Source: Fimbriosthenelais zetlandica (lineage: Eukaryota). From it: 64,000 nucleotides of DNA. Below the pieces are notes generated by a model. It saw only the letters and a program-made list of their open reading frames with translations. It was not told the origin of the DNA and did no database searches. Both the position numbers and the translations under genes were made by a program. Shown piece after piece: positions 3,001 to 58,000 of the stretch; position 1 is the first letter of the stretch, and each line of letters opens with the position of its first letter. Where the stretch lies: positions 12,028,001 through 12,092,000 of the forward strand of contig OZ365111.1 of NCBI GenBank assembly GCA_977030845.1, in the 5' to 3' direction.

Positions 3001-3827
3001 AAAAAATGATTAATTTAAGACAATTTTTCTTCTTCAAATGGACAAAAATATGTCTGAAGTCAGACCCATAATCAAGTAACTGGCCAAAAGCCCTTAAACC
3101 AGCCAATAATAAGTCAAAGAAATCTTCATAAAGAAAAACCTCTTATAAGTATCCCGGCTGTAAGTAAGCTAAGATTATTTGAAGGTAATTATTAGAGATA
3201 CTTTCAACTGAGTGGAATGTGCAGCATTCTAGGCTTCCTAAGAAGAAACCAAAGGTCACTGATTGTAATAGTGTGTTGGGATTCTTGACAGGTGAAAAAT
3301 CTAGCACACAGCATATGATTGATTTAATTAAAGGGTAGAGACGACAGGACGGACCCCCCATGTTCATATTTGATTATTAAATTGCATGCCTATCTGAATA
3401 TTCCATCATATATGAGTAGTAAATTAACGAGTATTATAATGCTTCACAGCAAAACTATAAATCATCTGACAAACATAAGGATTCACATTGACATGAACAA
3501 AAAACTGTCATTGACACTCTAAATTACCTCAACTAATAGGTCAATAATCCTGAGTGTTTTCTAGACGAACAAAGATAGGCTTTAGAGTGTTATCAAGTGA
3601 TCTTTTTCTGTCACATAAGATCAAAGACAGAGAGAAAAAAACCCTGATCACAAGTGCATACTCGAGTAAATCACATGGATGCAATACATATCAAATGACA
3701 TACACAAAACCCTATTAGACATTGAATGACATATATGAGAGAAGAATTCGGCACAAAGGGTTTCAATGTCATATATAGAACTGTTGTATCACTTTCATGA
3801 GTTACATGCAAAAAGTAGACGACCTAC

Positions 3828-3995
3828 CTTGGTCTGGAGAAAGTTGAGACTTTTGTTACAGTTTTCCACCTTCTGTACACGGAGCACGCCTTTGTTAGGC
3901 CGGCCCAGGTTCTCACCTGAGATAATCTCCAGTAGTCGCATCAGCATCTTCCCATCTGCCAGATCCGTGAACAAGTCGTGGATCTGGAGATGGGC
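3828..3995 (-). CDS. SPTBN5: Beta-heavy spectrin (karst/sma-1/SPTBN5-like), CH1 domain coding exon; gene continues beyond the left edge of the window
   Basis: AG acceptor (3996-3997) and GTAGGT donor (3822-3827); 56 codons AHLQIHDLFTDLADGKMLMRLLEIISGENLGRPNKGVLRVQKVENCNKSLNFLQTK, the spectrin actin-binding CH1. The FLxTK-V ending resembles beta-heavy spectrin rather than conventional beta-spectrin (FLKEQRV). The next expected exon (VxLESIGAEDIVDG) was not found in 1-3800. Confidence 0.93.
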
Positions 3996-4228
3996 CTGGA
4001 AAAAAAATCGATTCAAAAGTTAATTAATTCATTAATGGTCTATTTTCACCATTCACATTTTTCTAGATGAGAAGAAAGGATTTCAACTTTTAATTTTTAC
4101 TGATAAACTTAAAAAAAAAAAAAAAAAAAAAAAAAATTTGGTTAAATGTTCATTCATTATTGAGCTACTTATGAGAGCTCAGCACATCCTTTTCTTCATA
4201 ATATTTATGGAAAAAATTATCTATTTAC

Positions 4229-4348
4229 CTTTTCCAGAAATGAGTTGCACCATTTTGTGAATGTTTTCTTTTGGATGTAGACACGCTCCTGCTGCAGGAC
4301 CTGAATCCGGCCCTTCTCAAACTTAGCCCCCCCGTCCTGCAGCTCCAT
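4229..4348 (-). CDS. SPTBN5: Beta-heavy spectrin, first conserved coding exon (exon begins at 4360, ATG at 4348)
   Basis: MELQDGGAKFEKGRIQVLQQERVYIQKKTFTKWCNSFLEK matches the karst-type N-terminus (KFExxRIxxLQxERxxIQKKTFTKW). Acceptor tttttgcAG at 4361-4362, donor GTAAAT at 4223-4228, phase 0 join to the next exon. Confidence 0.95.
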
Positions 4349-5432
4349 TTCATGAGCGCTCTGCAAAAAAAAAATAACACAATTTATCAATAAAATTGTC
4401 TTTAAAAAATACACAAATCTTCGCTGAATAGAAACAATTTACGGGGATTTATAATTAGTCAAGATGATCATAACAGTCACAATTGATCCACTGCAGGAAT
4501 TCATTTTATTCATTCCATATTTTTTATTCTTCAGCATATATTATTGGCACAGTATGTAGGGTATACATGTCTAAGAAGAGGACCCAGCCTTGGAGGATAC
4601 ATGCATGTTCCATTGTAATAACATTCACAACATTTTATCTCAGATCTTTATCTAAGTGGTAAATTTGCTCATCCTTATCTCACACATCACACCATGTCCA
4701 ATTGTTCTATCTGTAACTATATCATTATGTAGGTTGAACTCTTTATCTTGCCTCTGAAGAAAAAACACTTCAGCCCATAGGATTACTCATGAACCACATC
4801 CTAGCTAGCTAAAAGCCCAATTACGTTACTTCAGTGTCACTGGTACCCGTAAACATCTTAGTCCTTGTACCGAATTAATGTAAGAAAAGAAATTAGTGTA
4901 AGAAAAGACTGATCAAGCAAACTAGGTAGGACATTATTTATTGCTCCTTTCACAGAATACCAAGTAAGACAGGGGTGACTCTTTTAACTAGAACCCATAG
5001 TAACAGAAGTATTTAAATATCAGTGATTTAAACTACTAATAATATCCACTGATTGCATATTTGGATGAGTGCTGATATTCAGGATCTGGCTAAATCTATG
5101 ATTATTAGACAGTGCATGCCAAAGTGAAAGTGATGAAGGAATATATTATATGGAGTAATATTTGCTAAAAAAATTCTTATCTATAGTAATCACTGCCTTC
5201 AAGCAAGATGGGGAGATGTCAGGACATTCAAGGGCACCGTCTAGAGTGGATTTGAGGCTAGAACTCTACTTCATCAATAAGTGTGTACTCCGAGGTATAA
5301 TCAGGATTAGTACTGCTATAGCAGGGGAAGCCTCGGGGAGGTGCCTTTTTTCTGTCTCATTTTCTCTTCCTCTCATTTGCGATTTCCTTCAAATGACTTG
5401 GCATACTGATACAGTACTTAGTAAGTACAGCA

Positions 5433-17658: not shown

Positions 17659-17871
17659 AACAGCCATTAGAGGTAGTAAACCAAATGGTAATATTTCCAG
17701 AACCTCCCCAACCGCGGAGGTTGATTATTCTACTGACCAGACACATTAAGCTGATACATTCGGTACTTTTTAAAAGTTTTAAATTATGAATTGATATTAA
17801 ATATATTTTCCTTTTCACCGTCGCTTCTCATGTACCACAATTTGTTGAACACCAACAGATCCAAGCAGTCA

Positions 17872-17990
17872 GTGGCCAAATGGTTAAAGAGATGAACTCT
17901 CAATACGAGGGGCATGTCAAACTAGCTTCGAGTCCTGCCATGTTCCGCGTTTTCGCTTTTTTTCCAACTGCTTATTTATTCTAACTCCCT
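17872..17990 (+). mobile_element. tRNA-derived SINE-like copy, plus strand (same family as 28140-28240)
   Basis: AGTGGCCAAATGGTTAAAG (A box) ... GCTTCGAGTCC (B box-like) ... TTTTTCCAACTG; aligns with the 28.1-kb copy. Confidence 0.55.
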
Positions 17991-18079
17991 TACTTGTATA
18001 TTGTAAGGTGCCATTTAGAGTAGTACAAGAACATGGGTTCGAATCCCAACAAGGTCATAATTTTTCTCTTTCAAACCAA

Positions 18080-18330
18080 ATCCCCTCTTCTAACTCCCAA
18101 GCACGTTTTTTCACCTAAAGTGAGCCCCAGACCAACATCTAATTCAGGTAATATATTTCGAGACAAAAAACCTATGTCCTTACGTTTAGGCCTACTATGT
18201 TCATCTAGGTTAAAATCTCCTATCAACATGATTTTGCTCATTAGTAAATAATTCATCTCCTCCATTAAACTATATATTCATAAGACTATAAAGTTATTCT
18301 GGAAGTGTTTGATGGGCCACATCATCGGCC
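18080..18330 (-). mobile_element. Decayed LINE APE-endonuclease relic
   Basis: Frame reads VGPSNTSRITL*SYEYSLMEEMNYLLMSKIMLIGDFNLD; IMLIGDFNLD is the APE IIxGDFN motif at the usual spacing from a YRPP-like segment. Confidence 0.55.
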
Positions 18331-25100: not shown

Positions 25101-27216
25101 AGACCTACCTTGTCAACTTGAAATTAATAAAGATAACATCCAAATCCGAGACATAGAAATCCCTACAAAGAGAAAAAAGATGCGATCAGGAACAAGTTAT
25201 CACAAAATAGAGCACAGAAAGTTGGGATTTGTATAACTGAATGGAGGCTTAGGAGGCTACTCATTCGGACCATTTGAGGTTCCAATGTAATTCTCCTCAA
25301 TGGACTGAACTTGTGAAGTGACGTTAGTAGTTAGTACACTACCAATTTGTTTTTACACGGGATTTACTCGGAGCTGAAAAGATTTTTCAGAGCACCGTAC
25401 CCGGTATAGGTAATGTCTCTCACAATATTTTAACTAGCTCTTACGTTGAAGTAAGTTCTGATTTGTATTCAAACTGTATACACTGAATAATATTAGTAAA
25501 CCATTATAAGCCGTTCATTATAATCACTGAATCAGTCATGGGTTCACTGGGTCAGAGGAGGTCGGCGTTTAATATTAAGCCTTACTACATTGTCTATTAA
25601 TTTCCTTCATATTTAAAGTCTTAAAGATTGTTATGTCGTCTAAAAATAGATCTATGGAAAATCAGGATTATATCAAAGTATGCCTGATTCATGTCTATTT
25701 AAGATGGATTAAGCCATGCAGTGGTTTTCTAACACTGCCAGGTCCATGGTCACGCACGGCCAAGCAAGGTATGTTAAGAATGCTCCTCACATTTATAAAC
25801 AATCGCCCTCAGCAGCAGCGCGATTAGTAGTGCTCACATTATACTAGGTCTGTCTATGGGATATAAGGTAGAGAGAGGGAAGCAGGTAGAACAGGCACTT
25901 ATCAATCCCTCAACCTTTCTCTTAGACTCAGTCAAGACAACCAAAACATTCCCCTTGACTTTTTATATTGAAAAGATGGAAACAATTTCAAGCTTGTCTG
26001 GGCAGAGTCTAGAAGGGAAAATGACCTGCAGAGATTATTGCCTGAGTAGCCTATAGGAAGAGGGATTTCCAGGTAGTAATATAGGGATTTCTAGATTTAC
26101 CGGTGTATTACTACGGTATCGGTACCGGAAGCATTATTTAAATGCCCTGTAGGATTCTATAGATTTTTTATTTATTAATTAGGCCTACCGGTAGGTATTA
26201 AGTTTTTTAATGGGTTGGGGGATGATTGATCCAGTCAGAGAAAAGATTATGTCTGAGGAAAAATAAATTCCCTGGACTAGACAGGGAGGAGCTAAATAAG
26301 GTGAAGACCTGGACTCACTAAAATTAATGACCTAGCCTAATGTGTAGTCATAGGCCTCGTGAAAACCTAATTTCCATTTAGGATTCTTACTACCGGTACC
26401 TAGGCCTAGGCCTATCTAGGCCTATAGATATGCCTAGTATAGTGTTACCTATACTGGTCTTATAGGCCTTGGCCTCTAGATAATCCGCAATGTTTCAATT
26501 AATATTTGAACAATCTAGGGCCTTGAGGGTTATAGTACGTCTACCGTACAGGTACTCAATTATTAGATATTAATTTAAGCCTACATGCCTAGGGCTGATA
26601 GTGATAGGGCCTACATTGAATTTGAAGATTATGCCTAATTTTGTAGGCCTACCGGGTAGCCTACTAGTAACGTGTGTTGTTACTAATAGTAAATACTATC
26701 TGAGGCGAGCACATTCCCTCAGACTCGGTCCTGATGTCACTGACACTGTGTATTGACATAGACCACTATTATCAAATACCGATAGGTCTACTGGAGAAGC
26801 ATCAAGCATGCCATGAGCTGCCTATGATTAGGCTACGGTATCATTCATAGACATGACATAGAGGCCTAACTAAATTTATCAGCACGTGCTTTGGTCGACT
26901 GGGTTCCAACGTTTTCATCCCGATAAGGAAACCCACTCTAAATATGGCTAAAGACGTTATTAGTCAGTAAGCCTACTGCAGTGACTGAGTAGTGAGTGTC
27001 AAAGCAAGTCCCACCCTCCTCCTCCCCCGCCTCCTTTCTCAACGGCAAGGAGTAGAGGCAGCCCCCGACCGGTCCCACGAAACCTGTCACACTCGACCGC
27101 CATCAGTGAACCCCCCACAAAAACCAAAACATTTCACCACTTCCTCGTTGTCAGTGTCATTAGAGACCTACCACTGAAGCTCCAGAGCTGACCTGAACTA
27201 AGATAACAAGTCCTAC

Positions 27217-27325
27217 CTTTTGGTTCGCTGTTTTTGGAAAGTGTATCCCTAAGTGGTTAACTTGTGAGTGCCAGCGTTGGGCGACTTTTTCAAACTGTGT
27301 CACTTACAATCCAAGATGGCGGCAT
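27217..27325 (-). other. Candidate non-coding first exon of the spectrin gene (distal promoter)
   Basis: Minus-strand donor AAAAG|GTAGGA at 27215-27216 directly below a CpG-richer patch with YY1 and CTCF motifs. The spectrin acceptor at 4360 needs an upstream exon. The 5' boundary is approximate. Confidence 0.4.
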
Positions 27326-27353
27326 GTTCAGTGACCATTGCGCCCCCTGGCAG
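27312..27353. promoter_or_regulatory. YY1 motif (CAAGATGGCGGC) plus CTCF-like motif (reverse complement CTGCCAGGGGGCGC)
   Basis: Close matches to the established YY1 and CTCF core consensus inside a patch free of TAGGCCTA. Confidence 0.6.
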
Positions 27354-27599
27354 AAGTGGCCGACACTCAAGGCTTGGTCAGCGCATCGAGACCAGCGCAA
27401 CGTGTGGCAAATGGAGGCCTAATGCCTAAGGGCCGCCTTCTCCCTTACCTTAGGCTTTTTTTATCTGAACGTTTGGGGTTTTCCCCCACCTTAGCCTAGG
27501 CCTAGCCTTGTCCTACCTAAGTTTTCCCATGGCGCCTTGACATGATAAGTCAAGTCAGGTCAAAATTAGTAGGCCTAACGTTAGGCCTACCGGTGTAAA

Positions 27600-27860
27600 C
27601 GCCCGAAAACACTCCCCCTAAAAAACACTCCCCCGTGTTTTGAGCCTTGAGGCTAGCCTCAGAACACTGGGGAGTCTTTTGAGCCTAGCCTCAAAACACA
27701 CAACTTTTCAGCCCCATAACACTTACCCTAGCCCCAAAACATTCCCCATCTTGACAATTGTAGCCTAGAGTCTTTTGAGGCTAGCTTCAAATCACTCTAG
27801 ACACTTAGGCCTACCCTAGCCCCAAAACACTCCCCATCCAAAAATTGCAATTGGAGTGTT
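27600..27860. repeat. Degenerate internal repeats (AAAACACTCCCC / CCTAGCCCCAAAAC / TTTGAG.CTAGC)
   Basis: Several imperfect copies of these sub-units in direct and inverted orientation. Confidence 0.7.
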
Positions 27861-27880
27861 GGAACTCCTACACCGGTACC

Positions 27881-27964
27881 GTAGGCCTAGACATTGAGCT
27901 GAGACATAAAAATTAGTAGGCCTAGACATTGAGCTTAGACATAAAAATTAGTTGACATTGAGCT
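27881..27964. repeat. 35-bp tandem repeat x2.4, with a further related copy at about 28105-28130
   Basis: GTAGGCCTAGACATTGAGCT.AGACATAAAAATTA twice, then GTTGACATTGAGCT. Confidence 0.9.
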
Positions 27965-28139
27965 AATAGCGATTTCCTCACTTAAAACAGCTGGGAACTT
28001 TACCAAAACTTACCATAGTAGGCCTACAGGTGAGATGTTTCCTTATTGGAATCCATCCTGTCTCTTCAGAGTCATTGCCAGTTTTTGAGATTCAGCAACA
28101 CAAACAAATTAGTAGACATGGAGCTAATAGTAGGCCTAA

Positions 28140-28240
28140 TACCGAGTTAAGGCGTTGAACTCCCAGTACCGGTACAAGGTTCATGCCAATGTGGTTCGAT
28201 TCCTAGCATGGACTAGGTTTTTCACTTCTTTTCCAACTGT
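28140..28240 (+). mobile_element. tRNA-derived SINE-like copy (same family as 17872-17990)
   Basis: TTAAGGCGTTGAACTCCCAG...GGTTCGATTCC (B box)...TTTTCCAACTG. Confidence 0.55.
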
Positions 28241-28246
28241 GCTAAT

Positions 28247-28426
28247 AAGAGGTTAAACCACGAGTGAAACGAGTTTAACCTCTTTATACCACGACTGAAT
28301 TTTTTTTTTTCATACCAATCAATAGTTCACAAATAGGCTAGTGTAATTCGATTCCCTTTTCCTTGTATTGATACAAAATGACTACAAGGAGAAATTAAAC
28401 TTCGGAGTCGTCGTCGTGGTATAAAG
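28247..28426. mobile_element. Small element with a 12-bp-stem hairpin followed by 14-bp inverted repeats (HINE/Helentron-like architecture)
   Basis: AAGAGGTTAAAC-cacgagtgaaacga-GTTTAACCTCTT hairpin (28247-28283); CTTTATACCACGAC (about 28282) versus GTCGTGGTATAAAG (about 28413-28426). Confidence 0.45.
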
Positions 28427-29625
28427 TGTCACTACCCCTCTCTTGTAAAACAATTTGTTATAGCCTACATCTGCTCAATCATAGCAGATTCAGTGGCCGA
28501 GGAGACGGCAAACATCGAGGGCGTTGACAGGACTAGGCCTACCGGTACCAGATTTCTGGTTGAAATCGACACAAGATTACATTGTTGGATTGTTCTTTAA
28601 ATTGTATTCCAGTTCTACACATAGCCCTACATGTATGAACGATTTAACGTTAGGACCTAGGCCTAATCAAGGTTTGTCATAGGCCAACCATAGGCCTATA
28701 GTAGGAGGGCCAAATCCCGCGTACTGTCGCTGTGAACTTCATTGCGCGCTCACTGCAGAAAATCTGTCACTGTGTCTAGCAACGCTAGTCGCGGTAATGT
28801 CTATAGTGGCTTATATTTAGAGTTGTTTTGACACACTATAATTGCTTTAAATAGTTTCATTGTACAGACAACATGTTGCCGGTCATTTTGATACCAGGCT
28901 TTATGGGAATGAGATGATTAAAAACAAGTCTGTACTATGTTGAAAAATAGCGAACTTTGAGGGTCTGTTTTTCGATGTTATAACAATTTGCCAAAAAACG
29001 CAGAAGTTTATGAGAACCAGTAATATGTTATTGACCACATGTGGAAGTTTGGTATATCTAGTGTGTTTTAAAAAAGTAATATGAGTTGGGATCTAACTCA
29101 ATGGCCATTGCCATGCTACCCTAGTCAGTGTATGCACCTGGCCCTCGGTAGGCCTACGCGCATAGCAGCGATGAGGCTACTGGTCACCTACTTCCCCACT
29201 GCCCAAGTGTGGACACATTTTCTGCAGGAATAAACATGGATATACAGAGTTCTCAATGTAGTAATTTGGGCTAACGTTTGGGGTTATATCTCAAGAACGG
29301 AGTGTGATATAAACTTCATTTAAAAAGCATTAAGCATAGTGTCAACTCGTTTATGAGAAGAGACCTTCAAATCAGTTCAATGTTGAAATTTTTTTTAATT
29401 GTGGCCTCCCTACCTATAGATTTAGTATAACTGGATGGACCACGTCACCTACCATAGGCCTACCGACTAGTTGGCGGCAGGCTATAGGCCTAGGCTAGTA
29501 AGCATAAGGCCTAAAAAAACACCCTTGCCTCCTACCATCAATGTGGATAAGTACCTAGGCATGCTTAATTGGATTACAGGACTGTATCCATTCTAATGCA
29601 TAGCTAGGTAATGATCCACATTGAC

Positions 29626-29654
29626 ACTAGGTGGCAGTGGTGCTGCCACCTAGT
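29626..29654. promoter_or_regulatory. Inverted pair of CTCF-like cores forming a 12-bp stem
   Basis: ACTAGGTGGCAG-tggtg-CTGCCACCTAGT; each arm resembles the CTCF core CAcYAGGTGGCAG. Confidence 0.45.
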
Positions 29655-29980
29655 AAGCAATGGGCGATTCGTTATCCAGCCACACTTAGACTGCTGTAGG
29701 CCTATATAGGCTAGTCCAAGTATGGCTAAATAATGATTATTTGATCATCTGAAGGGAAGAGTTTTTGACATATAATTCTTTAATTGTTTATTCTCATTCA
29801 TTATAAATTTATTGTCATTTTCTATTCATTAACACAAATTCATACTCTCATAGGACCCCCTCCACCCGGGAACCCCCCTATAGGCCTAGTGCATAGAAGT
29901 GTCCGGCTCACGCTCGCGGACGGACTCCCAATAACCCCGGTGAGTCAAAAGGGGGGTCGTTTTAAGTTGTTTAAATTTAT

Positions 29981-32246: not shown

Positions 32247-32486
32247 TGTGTATAGCAATTGAGATCATCAAAGTCAACTAAAAAAATGAATTACAATACT
32301 TTATCGAGCCTATAGTTTGTCCATTGTATTGAGCAAATTATGTCTCTATTATTTACAGATCGATTCGTCTATTTCGTGTATAACAACTGAGATCATGAAA
32401 GTCAACTAAAAAATGAATTACAATACTTTATCGAGCCTATAGTTTGTATTGAGCAAACTATGCCTCTATTATTTACAGATCGATTA
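32247..32486. repeat. Tandem duplication (~120-130 bp x2) inside the GT7 intron
   Basis: GTGTATA.CAA.TGAGATCAT.AAAGTCAACTAAAAAA.TGAATTACAATACTTTATCGAGCCTATAGTTTGT...TTTACAGATCGATT occurs twice. Confidence 0.9.
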
Positions 32487-32536
32487 GTCATTTTCATGTT
32501 TAGATACCGGTATGTTAAAATATCGATTACATGTAC

Positions 32537-47728: not shown

Positions 47729-48685
47729 CAGTGGAACCTCGCTATCCGGCCACCTCACTTTACCGGCCACCTCGCTATGTGGCCAGAAAAAGCCCAGTCC
47801 CGAATTTGTTCCCTCTATATCATGTTTAATTCTTATTCAATAAAACGGCCACTCACTAAACCGGCCACCTCGCGTTATGGCCGGCATTTCATGGACAAAC
47901 AAAGGATTTACATCTCACTAAACCGGCCATGGTGACCAGAGGAGCAGACATTTCTTTGATGATGTAACAGCACGGCGCGACTGGGGGGCCGACGCCGAGT
48001 CTGAGGGGCGGATTAAATCATTAAAACTACATGTAGATAGCCCTGAATACACACATTCACCCCCTACCCCTTACCAGCAGGCATGATCATAGCCTCATTA
48101 ATGGTTTTCAAAACGACCTTTAATTCAGGCACTTTGCTGATGAAATCAAAGAAATGTTCTCATAATTTATTTAGCCATTTCACACTAAACCATCGAATCT
48201 AAACAAAGTTAATCGTAGCTTGACTCATATGTCTTCTGCGTGGGTAAATTTGAGTAAATGTTCTGTATGTGGTGTTTTATTTTAAATTTTGCCTTGATCT
48301 GATCTATTAACAGAAATTTATTCACAACTTAGGCCAATTTATGGGACAAATCGTGGCTGTCGGTAGGCGAAACCACCATAACGGGCCGGTGATGAAGCCC
48401 TACCAGGTCTATCAGTGGGAGAAACCACCAAAAAAGCACATTTTATTTATTTATAGAATAAAAATTGTTGGTTTCCTTTAAACAAGACCTGATCGTCCCT
48501 ATTTTATTATGAAAAGAGATGAGTATACCGGTAGTGTAAACATTGCGCATTTGGTGGTCAGCAATCTAATGACCAATATGGTTGTGTAGGCTATCGGGCA
48601 ACTGTACCTCACCAAACCGGCCATCTCGCTATCCGGCCAGAAAAGGCTCAGTCCCAATGGTGGCCGGATTAGTGAGGTTCCACTG
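47729..48685. mobile_element. 957-bp non-autonomous Tc1/mariner(pogo)-type DNA transposon in CDKL1 intron 1
   Basis: TA|CAGTGGAACCTCGCTATCCGGCCACC ... GGTGGCCGGATTAGTGAGGTTCCACTG|TA: ~26-bp TIRs, TA target duplication, subterminal CCGGCCA(C/T)CTCG repeats, no transposase ORF. Confidence 0.9.
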
Positions 48686-52070: not shown

Positions 52071-52649
52071 CTTTACACACACGGTCTACAGGCAGCCAGT
52101 CACTGTGGACGCTTTACATGCTTTCTATATAATATGTGGAGTAGGCATGTAGACTAGATAGGACTATTAATTACCTAAAATAGTAGTCCGTACATATAAA
52201 TAACTAGATATTAAAATATACATTATTTATAACCTAGGGCTAGGCATCGGTTGTTGTTTTTATAGAAAGCATCCTGACTAATATTAGTAGGTTGGTAGGG
52301 CCTAGGAATAGGCCTAGGCATAGTCATAGATGCTGATTCAGCATAAATCTAGCCTAGATAACAGGCCTAGTTATGCCTAGAATAGATGAAACCAGTAGCC
52401 TATAATTGATTCCAAGGTAGGCCTACCGGTAAGAATCGGAATATTAAGCCACTTAGGCAGTAGCCTAACATTATGGCTTAGGCTATGCCTTAGGCCTACT
52501 AGGCCCTAGCCTAGGCCTACTGATATGATTCAAAAAGGCTTCTAGAGCCATAGAAGCTAAGAGGCCTAAATAGATGATTCTATTTGGTGCTGCTACCTTG
52601 TGCGTCGCCAGTGAACTGAGCTCCTCCGCGCCTTTACTTCAGACGGAAA

Positions 52650-52664
52650 CCACCAGGTGGCAGC
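52650..52664 (+). promoter_or_regulatory. CTCF-like motif
   Basis: CCACCAGGTGGCAGC, near-canonical CTCF core. Confidence 0.6.
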
Positions 52665-52734
52665 TCTGTTAGTATTAGGTCTATGGTCGCCACCATCAGC
52701 TGAGTGCCCAAGCATCCGGTTATCTGAGGCGTGG

Positions 52735-52814
52735 CACACTCCGCATAGTGGCGCTCCAGTCGTTCCTCCTTAGAAGAAGGGAGGAACGACTGGAGCGCCA
52801 CTGTGCGGAGTGTG
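52735..52814. other. 80-bp GC-rich foldback (35-bp stem, 10-nt loop)
   Basis: CACACTCCGCATAGTGGCGCTCCAGTCGTTCCTCC-ttagaagaag-GGAGGAACGACTGGAGCGCCACTGTGCGGAGTGTG; the single mismatch is a G:U-compatible pair. Confidence 0.9.
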
Positions 52815-53529
52815 GAGGCGTGGTTTACTAATTTGTGAACTAACTTAGCAAGAATACTAGCCTAGGCCTATGTTTCCTCTTTTTAGGCCTATGTCCATGA
52901 ATTATATTTTCCAAATTTCACGAGGCTAGACCTAGGCCTAAAATCATCCCTTCAATTTTTTTTTTTTTTTAGTTAGATTTTTATAGGCCTAGGGCCTAGA
53001 GCCTGTTATGGGTGAATAGGCCTACCAGTAGGCTACCAGCTTGCACTCTTGATTAGGCCTACTCAAGTTTCTCGTATGATTTTCAGCTGGGGGCTCTTTC
53101 TATGCATAGGCTATGTGCATTAGGCCTAGGCCTACTACATTGCCTTGTGTGAGATGGATATTTCTAGGTGCATGTGGTAGATAGAACATAGGCCTATTAG
53201 TTAGGCCTAGCCTATATGCATAACCTTGAGGAGGGAGGCATTGGAAAAAACAACTGAGCTAACTCCCCTCCTTTCGATGGCATAGGCCTAGGTCTGACAT
53301 GTTGGGATCATGGCTCCATAGGCCTAGCCTACTAGCCTAGTTTTACCCGCTTTGCCGGCTACAGTCTATTCGCTCTAAGTTGATCCGAAACTACAGTAGG
53401 CCTACATATGTAGGCTATGGTGGTTTCGGATCAACTTAGAGTGAACAGACTGTACATAGGTGGCTTGCAGTAGGCCTAGGCCTAGTGGTGCCCTGAGGTC
53501 ACCATTTGGTAGCGTGCTAATAATGTCAT

Positions 53530-53589
53530 CCGGAAGCGTCTGACCGGAAACGACTACCGACCAATCAGAACAGAGAACCAGGTGGCGCT
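53530..53589. promoter_or_regulatory. Promoter-like core: two ETS sites, CCAAT box, CTCF-like motif
   Basis: CCGGAAG (53530), ACCGGAAA (53543), CCAATCAG (53561), CCAGGTGGCGCT (about 53578) in a CpG-richer patch. Confidence 0.55.
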
Positions 53590-54460
53590 CTTTGCACGAG
53601 GCCATTTCTTCACGAATCTCGGAAAAGTTGGATTAGGCTAAGCGAAGTCTCAAGATCACCCAAGACACAATTTTGATCGACGATCGATATCCTGAGCGCC
53701 GAGAAGACGCCTACCAACTTGGCAACTTTCGCTTTGCAACTTCAACTTGGCAGTAAAGTGGAGTAAACACCTTGCACGATTGTAGCAGGACGCGTTCAAA
53801 ACATCCTTCCTCGCCAATGTTATTAGGCCCTACCAACCAATGTGTCGAAAATGGATAGGCCTAGGCCTAATTCATTCTATTGATACTTAAACGTCACTAT
53901 GGACATAGTTTTAACTGCAGGAAGTGTGAGGGACGAGTTGAATTTGAGGAGCGGAAAGTGCCATGAAATCATCCCATGATTATGATAGGCCCTAGTGATT
54001 GTCTCCTTCGTGGTTCATCACGTCATTGTTGTTTATTCAACCACAAATCGCCAAGAATACATTGAGTGACTGAGCCATCTGACGCTATCGTACCGGTTCT
54101 GCATCAAACTGTAAGTATAGTTCGTAGGCCTATAGTTATCTGTAGGCCTAGGCTACACATTGTTTTCACTTTTATAAGAATCTTATAGTTATAGGCCTAC
54201 GGTGTTTACGAGAGTGGGAGACTTCTGAGAGATCTAATATTGTTTGGAGTTGATAATTATATTTTATCTAGGCCTATGTAGGCCTACAATCTGTAATTCA
54301 TTATAGAGTGATAACAGTTTGAGACATAGGCCTATATTCCTCTAGACGGAGTATCTGTCCCGGTGAGGAAGACGAGGCTTGTTTACAGGCTAATATTCCT
54401 CCAGCCATGTGTGTACAGGACCGCTGTGCGGTGGCAGCACTGTAGCCACTGATATACCTA

Positions 54461-55077
54461 GGCCTGCTGCATGTGAGATACAAATTGGGCTTTTCTAGGA
54501 AATTATAGGGCATATGCCAGCCAGGTATATTAGGACGGCATATTTTGAAGAAATTCAAATAAGTGAGTTGGCCTAATTAGGCCTAATTATCTATAGAATA
54601 TGGAAACAACTGACGCGCATAGGTCTATGCTGGCTGGCTGGGCAATGCGCCCTCTATGTGCGCTCATCTAAATCCGTTACCCTGATTGCACCCCATACAA
54701 GTACCCCACCACAGGCAAAAGTGGAAACTAACGCTCAATGGTAGGCCTGTGTCAATGGGAGAAAGCTTCTCGCCTCTCAAGATATTCAGCATGGACTCCA
54801 TAATGAAATGTATATGCAGGTAGGCCTAGATAAACCATTCATCTAGGCTTCGTCTAGGCTTATTCACTATTTAAAAAAACAATTTTGACTCCATTGAACT
54901 TTTGCCATTGTATTAGATTGTTTCCATATTCTATAGATAATTAATTAGGCTAACTCACTTATTTGGATTTCTTCAAAATATGCCGTCCTAATCTACCTGC
55001 CTAGCATATATGCCTAAGGATTAGACCTTATATCATTTCCTAGAAAAGACCAATTTGTATCTCACATGCAGCAGGCC
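54461..55077. mobile_element. ~620-bp foldback element with ~150-bp diverged inverted arms, bounded by TA|GGCC...GGCC|TA
   Basis: Left arm 54461-54610 aligns with the reverse complement of 54917-55077 (GGCCTGCTGCATGTGAGATACAAATTGG...TTCTAGGAAAT...TTAGGACGGCATATTTTGAAGAAAT.CAAATAAGTGAGTT...ATCTATAGAATATGGAAACAA). Confidence 0.75.
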
Positions 55078-58000
55078 TAGGCCTAATTGAGTGAATAGAC
55101 CCAGGCCTATGATTGCCTGCCTATATTTGATTTTGATAGCACCTTAATGAGTGAATGACCTTCTAGCCCTGATGACCCCCGTGTGACCTTCAGTCGGGGT
55201 GTAGGTCAGAATGTCTGGTATGTCTCACAGACAGTGACCGGTCACTCATCCCCCGCACTTCACCTGTTTTTCAGACACAAGTGTCTGGGTCCATATTTAA
55301 AGTTAGCGAAGTTATTTTTTAGCAGAAAAAAGGGCGTATCATAAAAATAATTAATAGGCCTATTATTGTATGTCAAATTAGCATAGCCCTATGTAAGCCT
55401 AAAGAAAAAAGGTGAAGAAAATAAAAACATATGTAAAAAGTATGTACATGTACCTGTGCATTGGCCAAGAGGAATTGACTTGTGGGTCCAAGTATTTAGA
55501 ATGTTGCCAGACTGCCACTTAGAGTAGGCTTACTTCCTCTATAGGCCTCGGAGTAGTCCTATTGGATACATTACAGGATTTACGGTTATGATCAACCTCT
55601 AATAGTCCTAATATTGAATCCCAAACTATTCATTCAAGGATCCCTACAATATTATTTGTTCAAAGTGAAGATGGAAAAACGATAGAAATATTCATCAATT
55701 TGTATGTGTTTATAGTATATTGGGTTGTCTTTCATCTATTTTTTTTAATGAAAATAACAGTTCTGCCCAACCCTATACTTGAACAAGATCCCATCCCCAT
55801 TATACCAAGCACTCCCCCCCCCCCATCCCAACCCCGCGCCACCCGTCCGCGTATTTTCCGGAACGTCCATTTACACTTCCATCACTTGTGGTCAATAATT
55901 GATGATCATAGGTCAATATTCGAGTTTGTACCACAAGAACTGTGTACTACCTATTGACCCATAGACCTTCCGTTACCTAATTTTGGAGTATTTAAAAAAA
56001 TTCTGAAACAGCCCCCTGGGTCTCGTGAATAGCATCGTTCAAGGGTCCTCCCAGCATTCCAACTTTTAATTTGGGTGGCAATGCAAGTAAAGTCAATTCA
56101 AAATTGAAAATTTCAATAATCTTGAAGAATGTATAGTAAATATTGTGAAATCCTTTTGATTAAATCTCTTGAGTTTTATCCTATATAGTTTATGACTCTT
56201 GAACCATCATCAAGATAATTATACATGTCATCCATCAATGTCAATGTCATTCATTACGTAATCTTTCAACCCCATATAAATGCGGTAACCACAGACACAC
56301 TGTTAATGAGATGAGCTGCACTGGTGTTCATTTTGGGTGAATGAATGGGTCCATAGAAAATGAACACATGGCAATTGAACTCGGTGCTGACTTCTGCTTT
56401 TGAAAAGTGTACACAACTTGATTGATTTTGCAGAGATGTAACCTAATATTAAGCCGACAGTTATAGAATCCATTGGCTTTTATCGAGTGTCCTTTTATTT
56501 CCAACCTTCTCCTCTGTGACCCTTTCCACTCTCCCAAGCCAAAGGTATGACTCATTCAAAGCTTGGGGTGAATGCATTGAGTGGTCTCGTTCAGCACCCC
56601 CTTGATTTACATTAAAAATATGTAGTTTTCAAAAAACCACTTAAAATTCACAAAAATATCGCGGCGGTGCATCCTGTTGAATATTTTTTGGGTGTGATTT
56701 ACAGTAATTCTATAATTCCACAAATGAACCGGGTGCGATGACACACACAAATCCACCTGTCTATACCCCTCCGCTTGACTAATAGTTCAATCCATTGCCA
56801 TGTCTCTCAGTGAAGTGGGTCGGTCCATTGAAGGTGAAGGGGGAGACTAGTGGGTCAGTCAGCGCCGGCACACCACATTTCATGTCCCCAGGTCCGGAGT
56901 ACCAGACATACCCACACCTCGTGTGTACAAATTTCGCGGGAATATTTCAGAATTTGGATACTGTCATCTTCTGAACTCGTCTGATAACTATCTCGGTGAC
57001 CTTCTCCCGTTCTAGATGTGAGTATATTTTCATTTAACTTGCTTAGAAAACAACATGAAGAGGCAATACACAATTTCTTGATGACCCTCTGTAGATACCA
57101 TGCCCAGTTCAAAATCTAATCGTTCTAATCCCGTTTTACAAGCCTTTCTCAATCAAATATCGAACTAGTTGAATGAAAACTGTTAATATTTTTCTCCTTT
57201 GGGACACTGACTTCAGTTTAGCGTGAAAAAAGTACATCAATCTTGGTTATGAGGCCCACGCTTTGACTTTCTTTGAATGAATGGAGGGAAGCATGAAAGG
57301 CGTTTCACTATAACTAGGTGGCTTGTAGTAGGGAACACAGATGGTGATTACATTGGTACTGGACAGCTGGGGTGGGGATTGGGGAGAGGGGGTATGGGAA
57401 AGGTAGAGGGAGAGGCGGGTATGGGGAATAAGGTAGAGGGGGAGGGGGGCTTGTACCAGACAGCGGAGACTGGGTCGTACTAGAGAGAGGGTGAATGTTT
57501 TATACCTCCCGCTGCATATCACACCCCCAAGGTAATATTTCATTTAAAATTTTCTTCTAAATTATCGTTGTTAAATTTGAGCCTTGAGGTGGTGGATGAT
57601 TATTTTTATTCACTTCACTACCAGCAGATGTTTTGTGGCGGGATGATGCTCTAATGATGACTTGGAGAGGTTCCGGAATCAATGTTGATTCTACATGATG
57701 ATTCATAAATTAGGAATCCTAGCGAGCTAGCCTTAATGTGATGATTGTGTCTGTAATATAATGAAAACTATTTCTAAAATTGGCAAATATTCAGCCGTCT
57801 TATCTGTGAGTTGCACCAAAAATAAGGAAAATATTGGGATCTATAACATTATCACTTCCTCTATTGACATTATGATAATATTATATTTGCGGTGCATCCT
57901 ATGACCAACGGTGTTTTATTCTAAGCTAACATTTGAGCAATATATTATTTAGTGGAGTATATTTCAATATACAAAATTGTCATTGAAGGGAAATCCAGGA

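Follow-up and report, generated by a model that had tools for sequence, protein, structure and literature searches.

Cut-and-paste transposons that have excised are all but invisible to ordinary repeat annotation; Sleeping Beauty, on excision, leaves the scar TAC(A/T)GTA. In Phytophthora, a scar origin was discussed for the upstream motif TACATGTA and rejected by the authors in favour of a homeodomain site (PMC3520976), and in the PHIS superfamily (PIF/Harbinger, ISL2EU and Nuwa) the terminal repeats commonly have GG or AG at their start, some groups preferring palindromic targets such as C|TNA|G (PMC4482050). Here we describe a stretch of 64,000 nucleotides from Fimbriosthenelais zetlandica (contig OZ365111.1, positions 12,028,001 to 12,092,000; hereafter the window, numbered from its first base), in which the palindrome TAGGCCTA is concentrated in two fields at gene 5' regions. 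We put at about one half the probability that an excised TA-duplicating cut-and-paste transposon left TAGGCCTA, and more rarely TACCGGTA, behind as repair scars.

The window is animal DNA with a GC content of 38% and a CpG observed-to-expected ratio of 0.5. The hexamer AGGCCT occurs in it 80 times, as compared to 12.8 ± 3.7 times in dinucleotide-preserving shuffles of the window (n = 100), none of which reached 80. The octamer TAGGCCTA accounts for 63 of these 80 hexamers, T preceding AGGCCT in 69 and A following it in 71 with positions further out near background, and the TA..TA frame holds 30% of all GGCC tetramers in the window; a strict TA frame on both sides of most copies is what would be expected of the footprint of a TA-duplicating transposon. 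When all 136 TA-NNNN-TA words were scored over the whole window against a third-order Markov expectation, the top three were all palindromic, namely TAGGCCTA (63 versus 3.5), TACCGGTA (12 versus 0.95) and TACATGTA (18 versus 3.0), with two more palindromes, TAGATCTA and TAACGTTA, mildly enriched. That the outlier cores are palindromic is expected if they derive from two inverted transposon ends. The pattern is real, strong and unusual, and the counts and positions by which a sequence-only reading had drawn attention to it, those of AGGCCT, of the 14-mer TAGGCCTACCGGTA (at 26180, 28534 and 52418) and of a long chain that begins at 26391, all hold on recount. The same reading had spoken of many TACCGGTA between 26180 and 29890, a generous wording for the 4 found there, although the octamer is enriched window-wide (12 versus 0.43 expected).

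Most of the octamers are confined to a small part of the window. With field bounds set for density counts at 26.0-30.0 kb and 52.2-55.6 kb (7.4 kb, or 11.6% of the window), 52 of the 63 TAGGCCTA fall within the two fields (binomial P about 3e-38). Field 1 (26180-29890) contains 26 AGGCCT, 21 of them as TAGGCCTA, together with the 4 TACCGGTA and with 7-mer and 9-mer variants, as opposed to 8 AGGCCT in the first 24 kb, and field 2 (52296-55362) is denser still, with 38 AGGCCT, 31 TAGGCCTA and many 7-mers and 9-mers. Both fields enclose GC-richer islands that are motif-free, or nearly so, and that lie beside gene 5' ends. The spacing of the sites shows no 10-bp or nucleosome-scale periodicity, and an apparent 60-bp wave was not significant.

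The motifs also appear as six-base differences between paralogous copies. There are four paralogue pairs in the window in which one copy has, at a TA, exactly GGCCTA or CCGGTA that the other lacks, and the other indels of at least 5 bp in the window's paralogue alignments number about three. In a foldback described below, the left arm is filled at 54578-54585 and the right arm has a TA (54940-54947) without exactly GGCCTA; once emptied, the left arm equals the right arm at 59 of 61 bases. A second filled site (27806-27813) lies in CACTTAGGCCTACCCTAG, which starts at 27802, and the paralogous copy at 27720 reads CACTTACCCTAG. Two further filled sites belong to a 35-bp tandem pair (27882 and 27917; interval 27882-27924) whose related copies at 27948 and 28109 show TT or TA without GGCCTA, and a filled TACCGGTA (28167-28174) is found in a tRNA-related copy resembling a short interspersed nuclear element (SINE), the diverged copy at 17899 reading CAATACGAGG with no 6-bp insert. 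These comparisons support the view that at TA the motifs act as indels of 6 bp.

The two SINE-like copies (17862-18110 and 28128-28300) are diverged and show a T-run as well as a B box of the tRNA type, GGTTCGA[A/T]TCC. They were not recognised as tRNA-related by ARAGORN and Rfam, emptied copies included, and a metagenome scan with the B-box region found nothing. At the head of the copy at 28 kb, TAGGCCTA at 28131-28138 may align with GTGGCCAA at 17870-17885; the alignment is weak, and it hints that some octamers may arise from near-matches instead of clean 6-bp insertions. A minus-strand open reading frame (ORF) at 18074-18277 has a GDFN motif reminiscent of the endonuclease of a long interspersed nuclear element (LINE), and TAGGCCTA at 18187 adds Arg-Pro to it in frame; neither a homologue nor a Pfam match was found for this fragment, which is a putative LINE only. 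A 135-bp tandem duplication with 87% identity (32248-32502) ends a few bases before the TACCGGTA at 32505.

Neighbouring motifs are frequently joined through a common TA. There are 18 pairs of scar-like motifs that share a TA, including pairs of GGCC with CCGG (or its CpG-decayed form) or with ACGT, and in the three-member chain TAGGCCTA-ACGT-TAGGCCTA at 27570-27589 both TAs are shared. We stripped all scars from the sequence and re-inserted them under three rules. Re-insertion one by one at random TAs, new TAs included, gave 12.4 ± 3.0 sharing pairs (P = 0.04 for at least 18), re-insertion at original TAs only gave none, and re-insertion at random positions gave 2.9 ± 1.6, with 0 of 1000 runs reaching 18. 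Most of the chaining is therefore explained if the TAs of scars were targeted again, and the suggestion that each new TA was re-used as a target is supported by a number of pairs at about the rate of sequential insertion; because the stripping step assumes the scar model, this simulation tests consistency and proves nothing by itself. No chain has more than two GGCC-type 8-mers in a row, and a hexamer microsatellite was rejected as the source of the fields, there being no head-to-tail arrays.

The spectrum of imperfect copies points in the same direction. Beside 52 exact 8-mers, the fields contain 25 copies that are one base shorter (TAGCCTA or TAGGCTA), 6 that are one base longer and 18 with single substitutions in the four core positions, so that length variants (31) exceed core substitution variants (18), and every class, the exact copies included, is denser in the fields than in the rest of the window by a factor of about 15 to 20. 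As mutation spectra generally go, mutational decay of exact copies would produce roughly tenfold more substitutions than 1-bp indels. As length variants are the majority, such decay is disfavoured and variable end-joining fits; the spectrum looks like one of heterogeneous junctions rather than of decay, and junction heterogeneity of this kind is what a footprint made from two inverted ends would show.

How, then, might such fields have formed? A transposon that duplicates TA upon insertion would, on excision, leave a few terminal bases of both of its inverted ends, turning TA into TA-GGCC-TA with a net insertion of 6 bp. We infer that elements with GGCC-type ends were inserted and excised many times on the shoulders of two gene 5' regions, that the core promoter islands either did not tolerate such insertions or did not keep them, and that the two new TAs yielded by each scar allowed chains to grow by re-use. 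As to the geometry of cleavage, TAG[G/C]CTA is precisely what GGC...GCC ends with a 3-nt stagger would produce, by analogy with Sleeping Beauty, and a 4-nt self-complementary GGCC overhang would permit clean religation to the exact 8-mer. The fields would then mark promoter flanks that are accessible in the germline.

Candidate source elements were sought as TA-flanked inverted repeats with a 24-nt terminal-repeat criterion, at which the window yields three independent elements. The most pertinent is a 617-bp foldback (54461-55077) whose ends, GGCCTGCTGCATG..., match at 24 of 24 terminal positions and allow the reading TA|GGCC...GGCC|TA. The empty site reconstructed for it, CC-TA-GGCCTA, is itself a TAGGCCTA, the element sitting in the first TA of the octamer, and its excision leaving GGCC and TA would create the chain TAGGCCTAGGCCTA, which is seen four times. 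The foldback is a candidate source-type element. Two elements belong to the CA..TG family: a palindromic mini-element of 91 bp (53362-53452), TA-flanked with Tc1-like CAGT ends, which has TAGGCCTA and TAGCCTA at mirror positions in its arms, and a 957-bp TA-flanked element (47729-48685) with CAGTGGAACC... ends (CAGT) matching at 18 of 24 inverted positions, whose ORFs have no Pfam match and which is probably a non-autonomous Tc1-like element. Of elements with termini matching each core, the window holds two for CA..TG and one, of ambiguous duplication, for GG..CC, but none for CC..GG. A scan for TA-flanked GG..CC repeats with short arms is confounded by the palindrome itself, which leaves only the 24-nt criterion informative, and ISL2EU was rejected as the source family, its duplication being AT and not TA (PMC4482050).

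The gene context of the fields was read from sequence motifs and from position upstream of a first coding exon, transcription start sites being inferred. Field 2 begins 1.1 kb upstream of the first coding exon (51158-50989) of a minus-strand CDKL-type protein kinase gene (Pfam Pkinase), more exons of which lie near 46.4, 42.3, 41.8-42.0 and 40.9-41.1 kb. Related ORFs occur in many animals, with identities to this exon of up to 95%, and three of them carry the jgi source name 'cyclin-dependent kinase-like'. A plus-strand exon in the same field stops at a GTAAGT donor near 54112. The motif-free island of field 2 (52520-52857) contains a perfect match to the CTCF consensus (52650-52662) and an 80-bp palindromic element with a 9-bp direct repeat, and a second, sparse island (53485-53823), with a single 7-mer, combines a CpG observed-to-expected ratio of 0.98 with a CCAAT box (53559) and a CTCF-like site (53577). 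In field 1, the island without GGCC-type motifs (26836-27491), which reaches a GC fraction of 0.53 at 27.0-27.5 kb and has a YY1-like AAGATGGCGGC at 27313 and a CTCF-like site at 27340, is the presumptive core promoter; a putative untranslated exon near 27.2 kb may belong to a calponin-homology gene, of which a minus-strand exon (3798-4019, Pfam CH) and a probable preceding exon (4220-4438) were found. By their sequence motifs and position, the islands are putative promoters and the fields would be their flanks. Two marine metatranscriptomes, sharing 9% of a kinase exon's words, gave only poly-T matches on 50.9-55.9 kb. The 80-bp element (52735-52814, within the region 52726-52823) is a near-perfect palindrome between 9-bp direct repeats GAGGCGTGG and looks like a miniature member of a family that makes 9-bp duplications.

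We also looked at orthologous CDKL exon-1 loci of other animals, which have 74-78% exon identity and are too distant to align outside the exons. The octamer is absent from 12 such loci, and one GC-poor animal (L002:5268-6213; ENA ERZ24900295, contig ctg6725l) has three TAGGCCTA in a 1-kb stretch that lies 4-5 kb upstream of the CDKL exon, where 0.18 are expected. The phenomenon therefore seems lineage-restricted, and perhaps not unique to this genome.

Several observations weigh against an origin of the octamers by transposon excision. (i) About 90 scars in 7.4 kb would require very many cycles of insertion and excision. (ii) We know of no member of the Tc1/mariner family that cuts 4 nt inside its ends. 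The full taCATGta is documented as a rare outcome for Tc1 in Caenorhabditis elegans, in the account given of it in PMC3520976 (citing Eide and Anderson 1988), and the dominance of the 8-mer here would therefore need a different geometry of cleavage or repair. (iii) The window contains no transposase and, at the 24-nt criterion, no element with CC..GG ends, nor did the GGCC-ended foldback turn up a second time in the window or in a metagenome scan with the foldback terminus; because the flank of the foldback is palindromic, its duplication fits CTAG or CCTAGG equally well as TA. (iv) Every filled/empty case is a two-copy comparison that reads equally as insertion or as deletion. As a claim about 6-bp indels at TA, the sequence-only reading is supported by the four exact pairs, but the direction that it assumed, insertion, is not fixed by them. 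(v) Octamers that stand alone tend to be preceded by G and followed by C (42%, as against 17% for generic TAs of these fields), which could be a target preference or part of a longer recognised motif. (vi) TACATGTA, though enriched and one of the three top octamer outliers, is dispersed across the window, with 2 of 18 copies in the fields. (vii) The three upstream TAGGCCTA of the distant GC-poor animal are explained by a conserved binding site as well.

This last point bears on the possibility that TAGGCCTA is a selected site for a lineage-specific dimeric factor, the fields being homotypic clusters. The DRE (TATCGATA), a palindromic housekeeping promoter element, and the ZFX-type AGGCCT would be precedents. 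Such a reading, which could coexist with a scar origin, draws on the clustering of motifs at two gene 5' regions and, in one distant species, upstream of the orthologue, on the extended preference tG-TAGGCCTA-Ca and on the identity of AGGCCTAG as the vertebrate ZFX motif at CpG-island promoters (PMC5848610). We nonetheless regard it as unlikely. The core islands, where a promoter factor might be looked for, are avoided, the sites being spread over 3.5 kb with 26 and 38 AGGCCT per field; the base after TAGGCCTA is C in 27, G in 23, T in 16 and A in 14, a distribution without the preference for G that would fit the ZFX consensus; the commonest variants alter half-site spacing; the octamer is missing from the 12 orthologous loci; and neither the 6-bp phasing nor the sharing of TA with other palindromes nor the filled/empty differences are predicted by selection for binding. 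Those last features are accommodated equally by a TA-specific insertion that involves no excision, in which a domesticated nuclease or another enzyme would make staggered breaks at TA that are filled and joined with a short addition of fixed sequence, GGCC being written between the duplicated TAs. To this idea, unlikely as well, the same indel, chain and variant evidence applies, and it is favoured in that neither a transposase nor a multi-copy source family was seen. As opposed to this, palindromic cores with TA duplication match paired transposon ends exactly, a GGCC-ended TA-flanked element is present in the window, and no repair pathway known to us adds a fixed GG to both ends.

Two further explanations dispense with the repeated writing of a motif. 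If the polarity were reversed, the fields would descend from (TAGGCC)n-like arrays or other motif-rich DNA, the empty copies having lost 6 bp through microhomology between TA repeats. The two-copy comparisons are compatible with deletion, and a weak three-way alignment at 27.56-27.86 kb could be taken to show one empty copy beside two filled ones, but Tandem Repeats Finder reported no arrays of the motif beyond two units (just a 21-bp array of two copies), unique sequence separates the motifs, chains of mixed cores are not derivable from the decay of an array, and the motifs' own origin would remain to be explained; we hold this to be very improbable. Scarcely credible, in our judgement, is the idea that a short dispersed repeat, a miniature inverted-repeat transposable element or a SINE, has piled up near promoters and brought the octamers with it: the 91-bp mini-element does have the motif in both arms, but self-BLAST of the 64 kb gave 11 repeat pairs and no flanks common to the 63 sites, and composition more than 2 nt from the motif is near background. 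A bolder reading holds that the octamers are more than passive scars and that TA-specific insertion machinery, either an active, promoter-tethered GGCC-ended family or a domesticated transposase, still writes the palindrome into promoter shoulders, where the arrays would by now be functional in factor binding, insulation or nucleosome exclusion. We consider it quite unlikely; were it to apply, transposition would be building cis-regulatory sequence directly.

Should the octamers be excision scars, as we favour, they would constitute a countable and datable record of germline transposon traffic, far above what resident copies suggest, and their density would map chromatin that was formerly open in the germline. 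A defined 6-bp insertion would, moreover, be a major sequence-specific contributor to promoter-proximal turnover.

None of the known systems compared here matches the fields in every respect. Akin to the ZFX/ZNF711 motif AGGCCTAG of vertebrate CpG-island promoters (PMC5848610, PMC7293018), the octamer has an AGGCCT core and lies near gene starts; unlike that motif, it has TA on both sides and no preference for G, reaches 26 or 38 copies per field, avoids the islands and behaves as a 6-bp indel. The Phytophthora motif (PMC3520976) is likewise an abundant palindrome, TA-CATG-TA, in upstream regions, whereas in our window the enrichment of TACATGTA comes without clustering at promoters and the core of the main motif is a different one. 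A PHIS-like trait is seen in the foldback, which begins with GGCC and sits in CC-TA-GG, but PHIS duplications are AT, TWA, ANT, CWG or TNA (PMC4482050), unlike the TA of our parse, and no transposase in the window ties the foldback to that superfamily. Full-text literature searches returned no description of TAGGCCTA fields or of scar accumulation on a genome scale, and for Tc1/mariner we found no report of a build-up such as the one seen here, at about one scar per 85 bp in promoter-flanking fields. The core of Tc1/mariner footprints is derived from CA/TG, whereas here it is GGCC or CCGG and the full 8-mer is dominant. In the remaining respects the two are alike: a TA on each side, a short palindromic core as from two inverted ends, junctions that vary by one base, and a net small insertion at the former TA.

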